In this document: piece after piece, positions 1,672 through 58,019 of the stretch
Layout: every line of letters begins with the position of its first letter
Numbering within the stretch: position 1 is the first letter of the stretch
NCBI GenBank assembly: GCA_038496445.1
Contig: JALMLS010000578.1
Span: 503,816 to 567,815, forward strand
Origin: Trichosphaerium sp. ATCC 40318
Lineage: Eukaryota; Protista; Tubulinea
DNA: 64,000 nt
Direction of reading: 5' to 3'
Translations under genes and position numbers: made by a program
Notes under the pieces: generated by a model
Told to the model about the DNA's origin: nothing
Database searches by the model: none
The model's input: the letters and a program-made list of their open reading frames with translations, nothing else

Positions 1672-3623
1672 TTACAGAACATTGTTGTTCTTTGCTTTGA
1701 TGACTTTAATACGTTCCCTTAAACTGAAACCGAGATCTTTTAGCACGTTTTTATCAATTTCATCTATTTTTGCGCCTGCATCATTCATCAATGCTCCAAG
1801 TTCGCTTGCTCTTTTAGTTGCAATGCCCACCTTCACTAATATTGCTGTCCAATCAGTTTCAACAGTGTTAATCGATTTGTTCACATGCAGTTGACCGAAA
1901 AGCGACTAGTAGACATTAAAATGCTAGTGAAACATAAGAGCAACCTGTCGGAGGTGTACCTTGTTATGGACGCCAGCTGAAAGAAGTGGTTTGTCAATCC
2001 ATGATGGTTGATCTAAAACTTCGCTTATATTATCTTCATCAAGCGGTAGAATATACTCTGTTTGCTCATAAGACTACAAATATTTATGAGGATCACACCA
2101 TGTTAAAAATAACTTACTTCAGAATAATGATTTTGTTCTTCAGTTGAAGCTACAGACTCTTCAGAAGAGATGTTTAAATCTTCTTCATCTGGCGGTGTAC
2201 TATTATTGCTTGATGTATCCATTAAGAAAAAACTGTTAGCTAAGTCATCTTGGTCACTTGATTCATCAGACTACATTTATTAGCTGTATATTGGTGTTAT
2301 GCTAAAAGACATACATTCAAATGTATTTTGCAGTCCTCAAGTACATCCTGAATAATATCACAATGTTCAGGAATATCTCCGAACTTGGTGTAATCATGAT
2401 TGGGATCAAGCACAGCTTTTGATAGGTGCTTATGTTTTCGGTCTTCTTTCAACTCACTCATGTGATCTAAAGTACTAACTTGAGGTCTGATTACCTTAGC
2501 AAACAGTTAGTACAAAAGATTACTTGTCAGTACATACTTGATTATGGTTCCTAAAGGTCAATTCTTGTGGTTTTGATTGACCAAAGATATTGTTACCATC
2601 ACTGACCAATCTGTAATCATGAGATATTGCCAAGAAATGAAAGTGTTTATTGGCAAACTCACGATATCTTCCAGATAATTTTAATGGCTTATTTGATAAG
2701 AACGGATCAATCCATTTCCCTTCTCCCCAACCATACAAACGACCTTCATGATCAATCACAAATGATGACTTTAACCCAGCATGGACGGATTTGATGTTAT
2801 CGAGTCCATAAACAATACCCTGGCCATACATGTCATCATTACCCAACCCAAGGCATCCTTTGTAGTTTTTCCCGAATGAAAATACTTGTCCTGACTTTAG
2901 AAGAACAAGTACGTGCACATCACCAATAGCAATATCAGTTGCATCTTCAATACTTGGAACACGCGAAATTTTCTTTTGCTTCAAGAACAGCTGTTCATAT
3001 TTTATTCCATAATGGGTAGTTCCCCAAAGAAATACATGGCCTGTTGATGTTATTGCTCCACTTACAAACGCATTGGTTTCAATTTTTGTAACATCTTTTA
3101 GACTAGGAACACGTGTTGGTGACTTTACTCTATCACTTTCAAATGAATGACCCAATCCATGATTTTCATTATCTCCCCAAGAGTAGACATGTCCTGATTC
3201 TGATAATGCTATACTCACCTTGTAGGCAGTAACTTGAGTGATTCGATCTAGATTGGGAACACGTGTTGGTCTTGTAACAGGTGACTTATAATGACCAACA
3301 CCCAACTCACCACGTAGATTATAACCCCATGAATAAACTACACCATAAGCATCAAGCGCAATACTATGGGAGGACCCAGCAGCAATACATACAATACTTA
3401 TGAGTGAATTTATTGGACAAGCGATAGATCTCGCTTTAGTCTTACGCACTAGTCCATGTAAGTATTGAAACGTTGACTTCTTAGCTGCGACCAACTGGGA
3501 GCTCAAGTTTGAGCCCCAAGTGTAAACATAGCCATCATCTGCGATTGCCATTGAATGGAAGCCACCCACGGCCAAACGATTAATATATTGCAAATTTAGC
3601 TGAGAAGAGTCTAGTTCAGCCAT
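1672..3623 (-). CDS. RCC1-repeat beta-propeller protein with acidic linker and C-terminal SAM-like domain
   Basis: Large first exon with RCC1 repeats (AAGSSHSIAL..G.VYSWGYN.RGELG). It continues through an intron (GTATGT..TACTAAC..AG near 2497-2537) and three more introns to LKDLGFSLRERIKVIKA. Confidence 0.8.
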
Positions 3624-21217: not shown

Positions 21218-22444
21218 ATGGACTTCTCAGGTGTTTTATTAGAACAAGCGCTATCATATTATCGGAAAAACCATCAAAAAACGTTAAACGCATTGATGGT
21301 AAACCAAAATAACGCAAAGTTCTTGAACGATCTAAAAAGCATTGTAAATACCACCAATATAGCCTTCATAAATCAAATCGATCAACTCATTTCAAAACAA
21401 ACTGTCATTACAAATAAACAGGGCTCAACACGTGCAAACTCTATTAACAAAAATATTGGTGCTAATATTTCAACAAACTTACTCAGTAAAACAACAGAAA
21501 AGACTCCAAGTGACCAAAATACAATCGCGGATTTTCCTCCAGAGGTTATTTCAAATATTCTACAGTATACAGATGCTCAAGGAAGATTTTCAGCAGCTCA
21601 ATCATGCCGTTTGATGGCTGATATCATTCACGACATTGTTGGATATAAAATGGTAAATCTCAAATCCGCTAATGATTTTGTAACGCTTAGAAAGTATAAA
21701 GGCGTGATGAAAAATAGTAAATTTTCGAAGTACTCACTCCTCATTGGCTTCCGTAATATCAAAGCCAATAATAGTTGTATTGATGATTATGATCTGAAAC
21801 AACTTGTAGATGTTCATTCCATAAATCTGTCAAGATGTACACATATGACAGATGAAGGCATAATATCGCTTGCTGGTGTTCATTCTATTGATCTACGGCA
21901 TACTTTAATAACAGACAAAGGTATTAAAGCACTCAAAGGTGTTCACACCATATACCTTGATGGTTGCGAACATGTGACAGATGAAGGCATAAAATCGCTT
22001 GCTGGTGTTCATACCATCTACCTTGCTAGTTGCATTCAGTTGACAGATGCATCTATCAAAGAACTAGCAGGTGTTCATACTATCGAGCTTTGTAAGACTA
22101 GAGTTACTTGTGAAGGAATCAAAGCGCTTAAAGGAGTTCACACTATAGGGCTTTGTGGTTGTAAGCAAGTGACAGATGAAGCCATTGAATGTCTTGCTGG
22201 TGTTCATTCTATTGATCTAGGACATACTTTAGTAACAGACAAAGGTATTCAAGCACTCAAAGGTGCTCATACAATCCATGTTCGACATTGTGAGCAAGTA
22301 ACAGATGGGAGCCTCAATTTTCTGACAAGTGTTCATACCCTCTACCTCTATGGTACTTCAATTACAGATGAAGGTGTTAAAAGACTACGAGAATGCTCAA
22401 CAATGAATGGTTATGCACTTCTACACTCCTTTGAGTCAGGATGA
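21218..22444 (+). CDS. intronless F-box / leucine-rich repeat protein (GVHTI-type LRRs)
   Basis: F-box IADFPPEVISNILQY..AAQSCRLM followed by about 9 ITDEGIKxLxGVHTIxL repeats. Confidence 0.88.
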   Translation: MDFSGVLLEQALSYYRKNHQKTLNALMVNQNNAKFLNDLKSIVNTTNIAFINQIDQLISKQTVITNKQGSTRANSINKNIGANISTNLLSKTTEKTPSDQNTIADFPPEVISNILQYTDAQGRFSAAQSCRLMADIIHDIVGYKMVNLKSANDFVTLRKYKGVMKNSKFSKYSLLIGFRNIKANNSCIDDYDLKQLVDVHSINLSRCTHMTDEGIISLAGVHSIDLRHTLITDKGIKALKGVHTIYLDGCEHVTDEGIKSLAGVHTIYLASCIQLTDASIKELAGVHTIELCKTRVTCEGIKALKGVHTIGLCGCKQVTDEAIECLAGVHSIDLGHTLVTDKGIQALKGAHTIHVRHCEQVTDGSLNFLTSVHTLYLYGTSITDEGVKRLRECSTMNGYALLHSFESG

Positions 22445-46976: not shown

Positions 46977-47873
46977 GCGTGAAACTTGTAAACAGTGTTA
47001 AAATCCTATGTAATGCAAGGTGGGCATGAATACTTCAACAGATATTGGTTGAAGTTTTGTGAAAAAAGTATCTTCACGTGCGTTTGAAGGCGCTTTAAAT
47101 GACATGAAACTATCATGACGTTGCTTACCTTATTCTATGGTTGCTTTAGGTGCTATTAGGAGCAGTGTGTCAGAATTCTAAGCTGACATAACTATAGATG
47201 TTAAGCCACTCGTAATTCAGCAAAACCGCTGTATCTGTTTTAGCGAACTTGTCTTTCAGTTGGGCTTCTTTACCTTTGCTGTTTTGAACTATCTACGAAA
47301 AATCTGAAGCTGAGAAACCCCAAGATTCATTTCGTACAAGGCTGGACTATTGTCGTGGTAGTCTTCGTAACATTTTTACGGTGAAATGAGACTGTATAGT
47401 TTGGAGTTAATAAAACCCCGATAAAACTCGCTCAAATTGGTATTGTACCGCTTTGTCTCGAAAGTTTTTCTTTGCGCACATAACCGAACAGGTGTAAGGA
47501 TTTACTAAAGGTGCTCGTAGATTAATAACAACGGATATTTATTATTTCCGTCCATAAACCCAAAACTTTCTTTTCCAACTTTTTTCTTTTTTTGGGGTTC
47601 TTTCAATGTGACTTGGTACGATAACGAAAATAAATGTTCGTAAACATTCAGGTGCTCATTGGGATTCAATAACAACTTAAGGGCCTTAAGGCAATAGGGT
47701 AAGAAGAACTAGCGATAAAAACATGTTCGACCTTTCTGAGCACTTTACCTTTAACCACTACCCAGCGTTTTGCGACAAATATGATTCTTAACCATGTGTA
47801 ATACTACAAGTGAAAAGAACGGGATTATTGCCATCATGTTACAAAATAAGGTTTGAAACTTTTCTATTGTTTA

Positions 47874-49526
47874 TTATGCCCAATCGCTTTCAAGCTTATC
47901 CCATTTTTGTATGTAAAAAACGCGAAGCTCTGTTGCAATATTATGTATCGCTGAACCTGGCATGTTGTATGTACAAGCATTTTCCCACACAAGCATAACA
48001 TGATCGTGAAATTCCTTAGCATCTCTATAGACTCCATTCTCAATATTGGACTGATTATAACAAAAAATGTTAACCACGTGCAAAAAAAAAACAACTTCGA
48101 AATTGTGCCCACCTTAATAGTGGCTAAGTCCATGGGACTCTTGATTATAGCAAAATAATCTGGTATGCCTAGTGCTATAGGGTCCACAGGGGCATTAAAT
48201 GGCCACCCGAACTTGTGATTTTGTATCTCAGCAAGAAGTTTAAGGCAGTCTGATAACTTTTTTCCTGGATTTGGACTCTTGGAAACTCCATGAAGAAGTG
48301 CGCCTGCTGCTACAAGTTCGTTCCGTTGTAAACTCTCTACGATCTCGCAATTTGTGAAAGTTTCAGGGCATATTTCTTTATGTTGTAAAGCCGCACTTTT
48401 AAGCACAGCATCCTTAACAACTAGTCAAAACAACATTCTTGCTAAAGTTTTGTTCTCACCTTTATCCCTGGAAAATTAAAAACACCACCTGCTAATACCA
48501 TGGATGTAGGGTTAAGCATACCCAATATGATAGCCAGCGCAACACCTAATGCATAACCAGCTTTTTGTATTACATCACGACATTTAACTTCGTCAGGAGA
48601 TAGCCCTTTGTTATCTTTACTTTCAAGAAGATTTCTATCTTCAAGGCCTTTCAAAAGCTTTATTGCTTCTTGTGGAGTTATAGGAGAGAGTTCTGCAATT
48701 ATATGACGCCCACCTGTAGAAGAACATTAATCTTTCATTACTAACACACCATAGAAAGTCGCACCACCCAAAGCGTCAGCTGTTTGTGTTGATACTGTTC
48801 CATCTGAATCTGTTATCATAATTGGACATGATCCAATACCAAGAAGGAAAGGTCCTATCGTTGAAGTTAACATCCAACATTGAACATCACTTCTACTGGC
48901 CATTACATTTCGTTCGTACCTTGAAGTGGCATTCCGTTTACATAGTGAGCAGCTCCTACGGAGAGTTGAGTTTGATCGCAACCAAATTATTTAGGTGTCA
49001 GAAAAATGAAAAAAAAAAAAGAATGTGACAAGAAAGAGTCTTTGTACCGATGCCGGTTCCACAAACAAACACCCCTATGTTATCACATGGCTTTCCCGCT
49101 TTTTTATAGTCGTTGTGGACCTTCTTTAAAGCTGCATCTGCGTCGTTTATGATGTAAACGTCGTTTGATGATAAAACTTTTTGAAGGCCTGTTTTGATAT
49201 TGTAGTTTGTCATTCTAGGTAGCTCACATAGTTTAATTACGCCTACAATACGTTTATAAACAGTTTAAAAGCTAGCGACGTTGCGTATGTTTTATAATAC
49301 CTTCTGAATCTGTAAGACCACAAACAGCAACGCCACAGCTTGTGACAGACCACTCATGAGGATAAACAGAGTTTAAAAATTGTGTAAGAGTCGAAACGAG
49401 CGTTTCTGGCGTGAAATCAGGTCCAGTTGGTACTCTGTGCGTTTTAGACTCATAGTTATCATCTACCAGTAACAGTAATTTCGTTCCGCCCATATCAACT
49501 CCTAAACGTATTTCTGATGCTGCCAT
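47874..49526 (-). CDS. ROK-family sugar kinase fused to a C-terminal bromodomain
   Basis: ROK motifs [32 protein letters not shown] and AAGA. The same exon continues into [31 protein letters not shown], and the last exon gives ENACTYN. Confidence 0.9.
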
Positions 49527-50618
49527 TGTGCCTTACAAATACAATTTATATTGTAGTGAAAAAGAAGTGAAATTTCACAAAACTTTCAGCTTTTTTTCAT
49601 CTGGAACAAATTATTTTAACAATGTAACTATCGTTTCCTTTCATCTATTCGAACGTTCCTTCTTTTGGATTATTTTCGCATTCTACGTGCCTTACCGCTT
49701 CAGTAAACGGTGGAAATTTTGAGATCCTCTATAGTTGGTTAAAATGGAGCAATATCATTATGTTTTATTTCAGTAAGCGTGTCCGTCCGGACCGTGTCAA
49801 GGAACATCCCTCGGAAAACATTGCAACTGTATTAACTTTTCGAAATAGGTATGATTGGCAGCAATTACATGTTAGCGTACACACTACAACGAATTCAGTT
49901 TGATTGGCATTGTTGCTGCCATCACCGATAAGTAAGACACTTTTTTGGTCACCTTTGATTGAATACATCTTGGCTCATAACGCAACTTTTTTGATTAGTA
50001 CCTCAAAAATCTGGCGTTGACAAAGCTGAAAGAACGATAAGCCAAACTTAAATTTATTCGTATGCACAAACATATTAAGCCTTATATATGACTCTATAGA
50101 GCCTATTCTACGTGTTCCCAGTCGTTGTAAATCGAAAATGAAAATAGAAATCAATCACCTATGCTTTCTTCAAGCTTCGACTACCTAACCAGGTCTTGTT
50201 ACAACAAGATGTCATAGCTACTAAACAGCCTAAGTAAACCACAATAATTTTTGTGTTCAGTTTGTCTACTACAAAAACCTACGAGTATTTTGAAATGTCA
50301 AGTGATAACCGAATTATGATGCAGTGAAAGTCTTGCACTATGTCCTTGTGCTTTCTTATCGACCCCTGGGTAGTCAATGCAATTGAATTAAGACAAGGGA
50401 TTGAAAGCCTGACTTGTGGATCCCCGCATAAGTTAAGCTCATTGCGGATTATTAGGCTTAATTTTTTGAAATGTCAGTAAATAATTTTACAGCTTTGTGT
50501 GCATAAAGCAGTCTAATAAATGAGTTTTAAGAGGTATCTTGGACACCAAACCCCCTACAGTCAACCATATAAAACATTTTGTGGTCCTATAAGCAGTTTC
50601 GAGTAAATATGAGTATTA

Positions 50619-50668: not shown

Positions 50669-50939
50669 CTACATCATACCGTTCATTGTCTACACCAGAG
50701 CACAGTCGCAAGTGAGTTTTACTAAGTACGTTGCCAATGGTCAAAAAAAAGGAATCACTACTTTAAGGTTAACTTTTGCAGAAAAGTGTCTATGATTCGA
50801 CAAGATAACGGTAAAACAAGCACGTGCTTGTAACCCGACATATTTTCCTGAGAGTTCCAGCTTTCAATGAGTACTTAAATATTTGAGGTTCAGTGAAGCG
50901 TTAACAATTAAACTCCAACAAAAACTAACAAAACAAACC

Positions 50940-56626: not shown

Positions 56627-58019
56627 CTAAAAATGTTGCTGTTGTTCACTTTTTAATCCATACATTACTGAATCTGCATATGAACTATAACGTCTGGACA
56701 ATCTAGTAATTTCACTTTGTTTACTAAAAGCATCATCCAACAGTGGCAAATAGTGTTTATGCTGCTCAATGAAAATGGTATGAAGACCTTTGAGTGATTT
56801 GATACATTCGACTGTCACAGAAGTATAACATACGTCTATTTCATAAACACCTTCAATTGCTTTGATTCCTTCATCAGTCACATGTTTACACTGATACATA
56901 GAAATAGTATGAACACCTCCCAATGCCTTTATGCCTTCATCTGTCACTTGTTCACAACATGTTAGGTTAATTTTATGAACACCTGCAAGCGCTTTGATTC
57001 CTTCATCAGTAATATTTACACAATAGGTAATATCGATAGTATGAACTCCAGTCAACAGCTTTATGCCTTCATCTGTTATTTGCTTGCAGGCGCAAAGGTT
57101 AATAGTATAAACGCCCTTGAGTGCTTTTATACCTCTATCTGTTATATATTGACAGTAAGAAAGATCGATAGTATGGACGCCAGACAATGCTATAACTCCT
57201 TCATCTGCAACAGAAGAACTAGAAAGGTTAATTTCATGAACACCAGAAAGATATTTGAGCCCCTCGTGTGTCAAATCGTCACACCCACAAAGGTTAATTG
57301 TATGTATGCCAGAACCAAAAGGGTTAATTGCAGTAACACCAGATAGTAGTTCTAGACCTTCATCTGTAATTTGCAAAAAGCAAGTACTCTGAGAGTGTCA
57401 TGTGTGAAATCAAGTGTACTTCTTTTAATTTTACGGCACCCACGCAAAAGATAGAATATGTTATCTTCCTTAATCTCTTCACACAGTCCTATAACAGTAT
57501 TGTCCATTATACCCTTACACTCTCTAATCTTTAACAAATCTGAAAAACTGTTGATATAAATAGTGTCATATCCAATAATTTGATGTATGATATCAGACAT
57601 CAAAGAACAAGACTGAGCAATTGAAAATTTGTCTTGTCCGCTTGTATAGCAAAAGATGTGCGAAAGAATCTCTGGAGGGAACTCAACAATATTAAGTGGT
57701 TCGTACTTGGTAGCTAAAGTCCTAGCAATTTGTGTTTAGGCAAAAAAAATTCTCGTCCTTTTGTGAATGGCAAGTACCTTCTCGTTTGCTTCTCTTTTGG
57801 CGCAGGTACATCTTCAAAGCTCGAGACATTATTATGTGTTTGTTTTAATAGAAGATCATCAAGTTGTTGAATCAGGGATCCATTCGCAACAGTTAACACA
57901 TTTTCAAGGTGTTTTACGAACATTTCGCGTTTTTCTCCTATTATCTTACTAAATGCTTCACCGTGGTAATTACCATAGTATGTGAGCGCGTGTTGAACGG
58001 AAACGCCTGGTAAATTCAT
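56627..58019 (-). CDS. F-box/LRR (GVHTI-type) paralogue of 21218, with a frameshift near 57375 (possible pseudogene)
   Basis: N-terminus homologous to 21218, one intron (~57722-57778), F-box IVEFPPEILSHIF, then LRRs in a shifted frame. Confidence 0.78.

Follow-up and report, generated by a model that had tools for sequence, protein, structure and literature searches.

A spliced and expressed gene of Trichosphaerium sp. ATCC 40318 encoding a ROK domain joined to a bromodomain

Genetic organization of the locus

The analyzed DNA region (64,000 nt, hereafter the window) originates from Trichosphaerium sp. ATCC 40318 (assembly GCA_038496445.1, contig JALMLS010000578.1, forward-strand positions 503,816–567,815). 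It carries, on the minus strand, a gene extending exactly from the start codon at position 49526 to the stop codon at position 47874. The gene is composed of seven exons and six introns (58, 92, 65, 51, 47 and 62 nt, in order), all of the GT-AG type, and encodes a protein of 425 aa (46 kDa, pI 5.6), in which a ROK domain is followed by a bromodomain. The coordinates of the identified features are presented in Table 1.

Table 1. Exons, domains and conserved motifs of the ROK-bromodomain gene (positions in the window; aa, amino acid residues of the 425-aa product).
Feature	Position	Strand	Description
Whole mRNA	47843..49534	-	~1.33 kb spliced; spanned by transcript contig X2, introns removed
Exon 1	49301..49526	-	ATG and strands of the ROK N-terminal lobe; phosphate-1 motif DMGGT (aa 11-15) at 49496-49482
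Exon 2	49048..49242	-	catalytic Asn-Asp in INDADA (N108 D109) at 49147-49142; phosphate-2 motif GTGIG from 49060
Exon 3	48920..48955	-	36 nt; splice joints seen in transcripts
Exon 4	48765..48854	-	divergent stretch in place of ExGH/zinc motif; LGIGSCPI (aa 157-164) at 48843-48820
Exon 5	48460..48713	-	ROK C-terminal lobe; adenosine motif AGG (aa 257-259) at 48492-48484
Exon 6	48113..48412	-	junction exon, 300 nt: last ROK helix, linker, first half of bromodomain
Last ROK helix (exon 6)	to 48281	-	aa 297-311; includes [11 protein letters not shown] (aa 299-309, 48319-48287)
Linker (exon 6)	48263..48280	-	KSPNPG, 6 residues (aa 312-317)
Bromodomain part of exon 6	from 48262	-	helix Z from aa 318; WPF at 48205-48197; PDY at 48163-48155; PMDL at 48136-48125
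Exon 7	47874..48050	-	second half of bromodomain; Tyr-Asn (aa 395-396) at 47969-47964; Ile gatekeeper; TAA at 47876-47874

As stated in the initial annotation of this region, the end of the ROK fold and the beginning of the bromodomain are placed in one exon (exon 6). The phosphate-2 motif (aa 137–141) runs from exon 2 into exon 3. An alternative donor site of exon 4, at position 48750 (giving a product of 430 aa), was ruled out, since the transcripts are spliced at position 48765. Neither a targeting peptide nor a transmembrane part was found in the fusion protein, and a tblastn search detected no second copy of the gene within the 64-kb window.

The gene matches the local nucleotide composition (GC content ~0.38). 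Long single-exon ORFs found in the window encode an RCC1-repeat protein (2520–3623, minus strand; WD40_RLD, 1.1e-56), a protein with an F-box and LRR_6 (21218–22444, plus strand) and an LRR_6 protein (56627–57376, minus strand). These neighbours are of an ordinary eukaryotic type, which supports a native genomic context of the gene.

In the window, 67 copies of the palindrome CACGTG are present, compared to 9.1 expected occurrences (sd 3.1; maximum of 100 shuffles, 17), and the gene takes part in this excess. The sites are scattered over genes and spacers, e.g. at positions 48075–48080 (within intron 6) and 50821–50826 (upstream of the gene).

Transcripts of the ROK-bromodomain gene

Comparison of exon 6 with 1.84 billion representative proteins (phmmer) revealed a single full-length match, P0001, a truncated ORF of 261 aa from an MMETSP transcript. 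The cluster of this protein also contains P0151 (425 aa), derived from a JGI transcript contig. The protein P0151 is encoded by an intronless contig of 1303 nt (L001), which shows ~99.5% identity to the window, with gaps at the positions of the introns. The window protein differs from P0151 in two residues (A401G and I405M).

Further transcript evidence was provided by assembled contigs of public runs aligned to positions 47400–50000. In a run from 2023, a single contig extends over the seven exons (49534–47843) and lacks all six introns; in a run from 2015, one contig spans exons 4–7. Spliced pieces of the gene were also identified in a run from 2024. At all splice joints, CT..AC on the plus strand corresponds to GT..AG on the strand of the gene.

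At the 49534 end of the 2023 contig, 21 letters do not match the window. We take them to be a SMART template-switch adaptor in reverse complement, which places the 5′ end of the mRNA 8 nt before the ATG codon. Both untranslated regions are very short, the 5′ one having 8 nt and the 3′ one ~31 nt after the stop codon (end at ~47843). The sequence TATAAAT is located just upstream of the mRNA 5′ end (49550–49544), and an AATAAA sequence overlaps the tandem TAA TAA stop.

The 2023 contig represents a variant of the gene, with 13 substitutions and a 9-nt deletion within the linker, by which the reading frame is kept. Residues S313–N315 are lost and two others are replaced (P316R and G317R), which generates the sequence KRRKK. 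The resulting change of SKSPNPGKK into SKRRKK (48263–48277) creates a basic cluster resembling a classical nuclear localization signal (NLS); no recognizable NLS or basic cluster is present in the window copy of the protein. The remaining differences cluster in exon 6 (e.g. F335D, G336A and G349L), and most of the differences found in this transcript change the encoded amino acid.

The initial annotation had argued that the fusion is not a splicing artefact and had proposed that transcripts across the junction be sought. Spliced contigs originating from two separate studies do cross the ROK/bromodomain junction in exon 6, and independent data sets point to a single spliced mRNA. A misassembly, or a chimeric transcript joining two genes, is practically excluded, as the junction lies inside one genomic exon of 300 nt, and splicing takes out the same six introns in phase. 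The ROK-bromodomain fusion is a genuine, expressed gene, transcribed into one spliced mRNA, although rare isoforms may have escaped detection in assembled contigs.

The bromodomain part

The bromodomain was identified in P0151 with a Pfam score of 70.2 bits (PF00439; cut-off 21.7, E = 1.5e-19), with positions 1–83 of the 84-position profile aligned to aa 323–407. The domain is also recognized when single exons are analyzed (second half of exon 6, 3.4e-06; exon 7, 2.8e-08).

Modelling with AF2 assigned pLDDT values of 94–99 (~98) to aa 320–425. The model contains long helices at positions 318–331, 363–371, 378–395 and 401–424, forming a typical helical bundle. The nearest relatives with a solved structure are the bromodomains BD1 and BD2 of BRD4 (~1e-21 as single domains, ~40% identity). 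In the HMMER alignment, equivalents of all the pocket residues of BRD4 BD1 are aligned: W81/P82/F83, Y97 (of PDY), Y139-N140 (of TYN) and the gatekeeper I146. The initial annotation had recognized the WPF shelf and the acetyl-lysine-binding Asn; the sequence indeed retains WPF, PDY, PMDL and TYN. Judged by these residues, the bromodomain is canonical and BET-like, and looks competent for acetyl-lysine binding.

The best non-self matches of the bromodomain were fungal and protist proteins of the ordinary multi-bromodomain type (40–46% identity). A search for a resident donor of the domain found none: the best non-self match in MMETSP, P0053, comes from other samples and is just 46% identical.

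The ROK part

The ROK domain of P0151 was detected by Pfam with 68.3 bits (PF00480; cut-off 22.9, E = 1.1e-18) in two stretches, the best of which corresponds to aa 8–154. On single exons, the domain was found in exon 1 (3.1e-06) and exon 5 (0.0066). Both domains proposed by the initial annotation were thus found by Pfam in one polypeptide (ROK, 1.1e-18; bromodomain, 1.5e-19). Sequence matches of the ROK half in PDB included 2ap1, 1z05 and the kinase domain of GNE (2.5e-06 to 1e-03). None of the cut-offs of the NCBIfam kinase equivalogs was reached (best score 43.5 bits, compared to 253).

The ROK half was modelled poorly by AF2 on a mixed alignment, while a ROK-only alignment resulted in a usable model (pTM 0.72, mean pLDDT 73.5); the inter-domain contacts were not reliable in either of these runs. 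Foldseek comparisons of the model with ROK kinases and regulators gave E values of about 1e-15 to 4e-15 (TM 0.65–0.70), and TM values of 0.71–0.78 were obtained with bacterial ROK clusters of the ESM Atlas. Structure prediction, which had been suggested as a check of the two-domain interpretation, returned both a ROK fold (pTM 0.72) and a bromodomain (pLDDT ~98). The only long low-confidence stretch of the ROK half is formed by aa 154–194 (AF2 pLDDT <50), which stand in place of the ExGH and zinc motifs; this part was left unaligned in the sequence searches.

Four signature motifs have been distinguished in ROK proteins: the N-terminal, nucleotide-binding DxGxT, the catalytic Asp, ExGH and CxCGxxGCx(E/D), of which ExGH makes the sugar contact and the catalytic Asp is strictly conserved (PMC5458393). 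The ROK half of the fusion protein contains two of the four (DxGxT and the catalytic Asp). In the ROK alignment, DMGGT is aligned to an invariant column, and N108 and D109 are placed on invariant columns; GTGIG and the adenosine GG are also conserved. The remaining two motifs are absent. ExGH is substituted by LGIGSCPI, with neither the Glu nor the His, and the zinc motif is a gap or a replacement in the alignment, without its cysteines. These results agree with the motif assignment made in the initial annotation, with respect both to the motifs kept (DxGGT, the catalytic ND and GTGIG) and to the lack of ExGH and CxCGxxGCxE.

ROK kinases are said to keep the nucleotide-binding motifs, which are reportedly often lost by repressors. 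Since these motifs are kept in the fusion protein, it could, by sequence, still bind ATP. Zinc-less ROK kinases exist, for example NanK of F. nucleatum, in which the major structural features implicated in catalysis are kept; such kinases retain ExGH or its Glu (PMC5458393). Given the existence of these enzymes, the loss of the zinc motif in the fusion protein is not decisive.

Distribution and origin of the fusion

All the ROK relatives found in the sequence collections and the ESM Atlas are bacterial, with at most about 30% identity (22–30% in the large collections). A word-indexed search of 5.8 billion clustered proteins, in which matches need shared 5-mers, was performed with either the complete protein or its ROK region as query, and returned the protein itself and two weak bacterial ROKs. 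The best full-length sequence match was P0152, a ROK regulator with an N-terminal HTH. With a profile of three sequences, which is dominated by one bacterial member and says little on the closest kin, no bromodomain was found in the ROK relatives among the 120 matches listed out of 1466.

The initial annotation knew of no described protein with this domain architecture. When the best 150 of 3463 bromodomain matches (HMMER, 1.84 billion proteins) were re-scanned with the ROK half, no other protein combining a ROK domain with a bromodomain was revealed, and no description of such an architecture was found in the full-text library searched. No relatives of the fusion protein were detected in metagenome contigs or in viral contigs, the latter having been scanned as a test of a giant-virus link, and the ESM Atlas, whose clusters need 50 members, contains no nearby cluster.

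The known carriers of the gene belong to one species only and represent two or three near-identical variants. On the basis of the sequence comparisons, the fusion appears to be restricted to this lineage, and the linkage of ROK to a bromodomain is apparently an undescribed, new combination of two known domain families. The ROK half is most probably of old bacterial origin, with six introns gained since, as eukaryotic relatives were absent in searches of limited sensitivity.

Possible function of the fusion protein

We tentatively interpret the protein as an acetyl-lysine-targeted ASKHA module. Its ROK half would be a pseudo-kinase that responds to a nucleotide or a ligand, or else a kinase acting on a different acceptor. 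This reading, drawn from the motifs and from knowledge of the two families, is held at somewhat less than even confidence. The bromodomain would anchor the protein to acetyl-lysine, with histone tails as the most plausible target. Nucleotide binding by the ROK module is probably retained, as its motifs for phosphate 1, phosphate 2 and adenosine are intact and so is the catalytic Asp, but the module would no longer recognize a sugar in the canonical manner, given that ExGH and the zinc motif are gone. It may thus act on, or sense, something other than a canonical ROK sugar. The region of the sugar pocket, modelled with pLDDT <50, may also form a non-canonical sugar site. ROK folds dimerise through the large lobe; dimerisation of the ROK module is therefore probable and would yield a bivalent reader, in which the two domains of each chain would be rigidly linked by the linker of ~6 residues.

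The initial annotation went further and described the protein as a candidate sugar-sensing chromatin reader, linking sugar or ATP status to chromatin. In such a reader, the ROK half would bind a sugar or sugar phosphate, as do NagC, Mlc and XylR, and switch the reading of acetylated histones, transmitting the carbon status to chromatin. Both domains are real, the bromodomain pocket is intact, and the very short linker would allow conformational coupling; moreover, HTH-bearing ROK regulators are found among the best matches (P0152 and rows 1, 4, 5, 6, 8 and 10 of the ESM Atlas results). However, the lack of ExGH (sugar contact) and of the zinc motif (pocket shape), in a region that is poorly modelled, argues against a canonical sugar sensor, the intact nucleotide motifs are reportedly a trait of kinases rather than of repressors, and no NLS was found in the window copy. 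We consider a sugar sensor of this kind improbable. The related proposal that the bromodomain replaces the HTH of bacterial regulators is an attractive analogy, but the bromodomain lies at the C-terminus and the HTH of the aligned relative P0152 at the N-terminus. The earlier interpretation as a whole is partly supported: the expressed fusion is real, and the “sugar-sensing chromatin reader” stands as an analogy, weakened by the missing sugar motifs. An active kinase of a sugar or another small molecule, simply brought by the bromodomain to chromatin or acetylated proteins for a local supply of phosphorylated metabolites, would agree with the conservation of DxGGT, the catalytic Asp, GTGIG and the adenosine GG. 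It would also agree with the known zinc-less ROK kinases such as F. nucleatum NanK (PMC5458393) and with the presence of two zinc-less enzymes, the NanKs of L. monocytogenes (4htl) and S. aureus, among the structural matches. Zinc-less kinases, however, keep ExGH or its Glu, which the fusion protein does not, and its score is far below every NCBIfam kinase equivalog cut-off (43.5 bits for the best, compared to 253). We consider such an enzyme equally improbable.

The gene may instead be a young, lineage-specific fusion in which the ROK half, lacking any ligand function, is decaying or serves as a mere scaffold, so that only the bromodomain matters or the gene is nearly neutral. The lack of an orthologue in the 5.8 billion clustered proteins and among the best 150 matches of the exhaustive HMMER scan is consistent with such an origin, as are the extreme divergence of the ROK half, from which two of the four signature motifs are missing, and the mostly non-synonymous differences of the variant. 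On the other hand, the survival of three nucleotide-binding motifs and the catalytic Asp despite ~20–25% identity would be unexpected for a relic. Moreover, the reading frame is intact over seven exons and through an indel, and the gene is expressed in the data sets of 2015, 2023 and 2024. A relic or scaffold is an unlikely explanation, though somewhat less so than the sensor or the recruited kinase.

The acetyl-lysine-targeted ASKHA module with an altered ligand or acceptor is retained as the preferred, tentative reading. A bolder reading, a metabolite- or ATP-gated acetyl-lysine reader in which closure of the ROK lobes on a ligand that is not a canonical hexose changes the valency or access of the bromodomain, is improbable. 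If it were true, a bacterial sensor fold would tie the metabolic state directly to acetylated chromatin in an amoeba-like protist, and the protein would be a functional analogue of the bacterial ROK repressors, reading histone marks and not DNA. Should the ROK half respond to a small molecule or ATP, the protein would constitute a compact, natural metabolic-sensor fold wired to an acetyl-lysine reader. It also offers a clean case of a domain, probably bacterial, that took up introns and was then fused to a chromatin module specific to eukaryotes. With 46 kDa and no transmembrane or targeting parts, the protein is easy to test in vitro.

Comparison with known systems

The fusion protein shares the two-lobe ASKHA/ROK fold with ROK kinases such as E. 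coli NanK (2aa4), T. thermophilus hexokinase (3vov) and the human GNE ManNAc-kinase (2yhw), as well as DxGGT, the catalytic Asn-Asp, GTGIG and the adenosine GG. The lack of the Cys-rich motif is common to the fusion protein and the zinc-less NanKs of F. nucleatum, L. monocytogenes and S. aureus. In contrast to the ROK kinases, the fusion protein does not contain ExGH, shows just 17–25% identity to any ROK protein, is eukaryotic, is encoded by a gene split by six introns, and has a bromodomain at its C-terminus.

With the ROK regulators NagC, Mlc and XylR, the fusion protein has in common a ROK fold combined with a module that targets, or in the fusion protein may target, the genome, and HTH-bearing ROKs are among its closest matches in sequence and shape. 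These regulators possess an N-terminal winged HTH, whereas the fusion protein begins directly with ROK strand 1 and contains no HTH detectable by Pfam. Its added module is C-terminal and probably reads acetyl-lysine, not DNA, and its nucleotide motifs are intact. The zinc motif, needed for the function of Mlc, is missing.

The likeness to the BET proteins (BRD2/3/4 and Bdf1) concerns the sequence of the bromodomain and its pocket residues (WPF, Tyr97, Tyr139, Asn140 and Ile146). BET proteins contain tandem bromodomains and an ET domain, whereas the fusion protein has one bromodomain and no ET match in Pfam; the partner domain of its bromodomain is a metabolic-enzyme fold.
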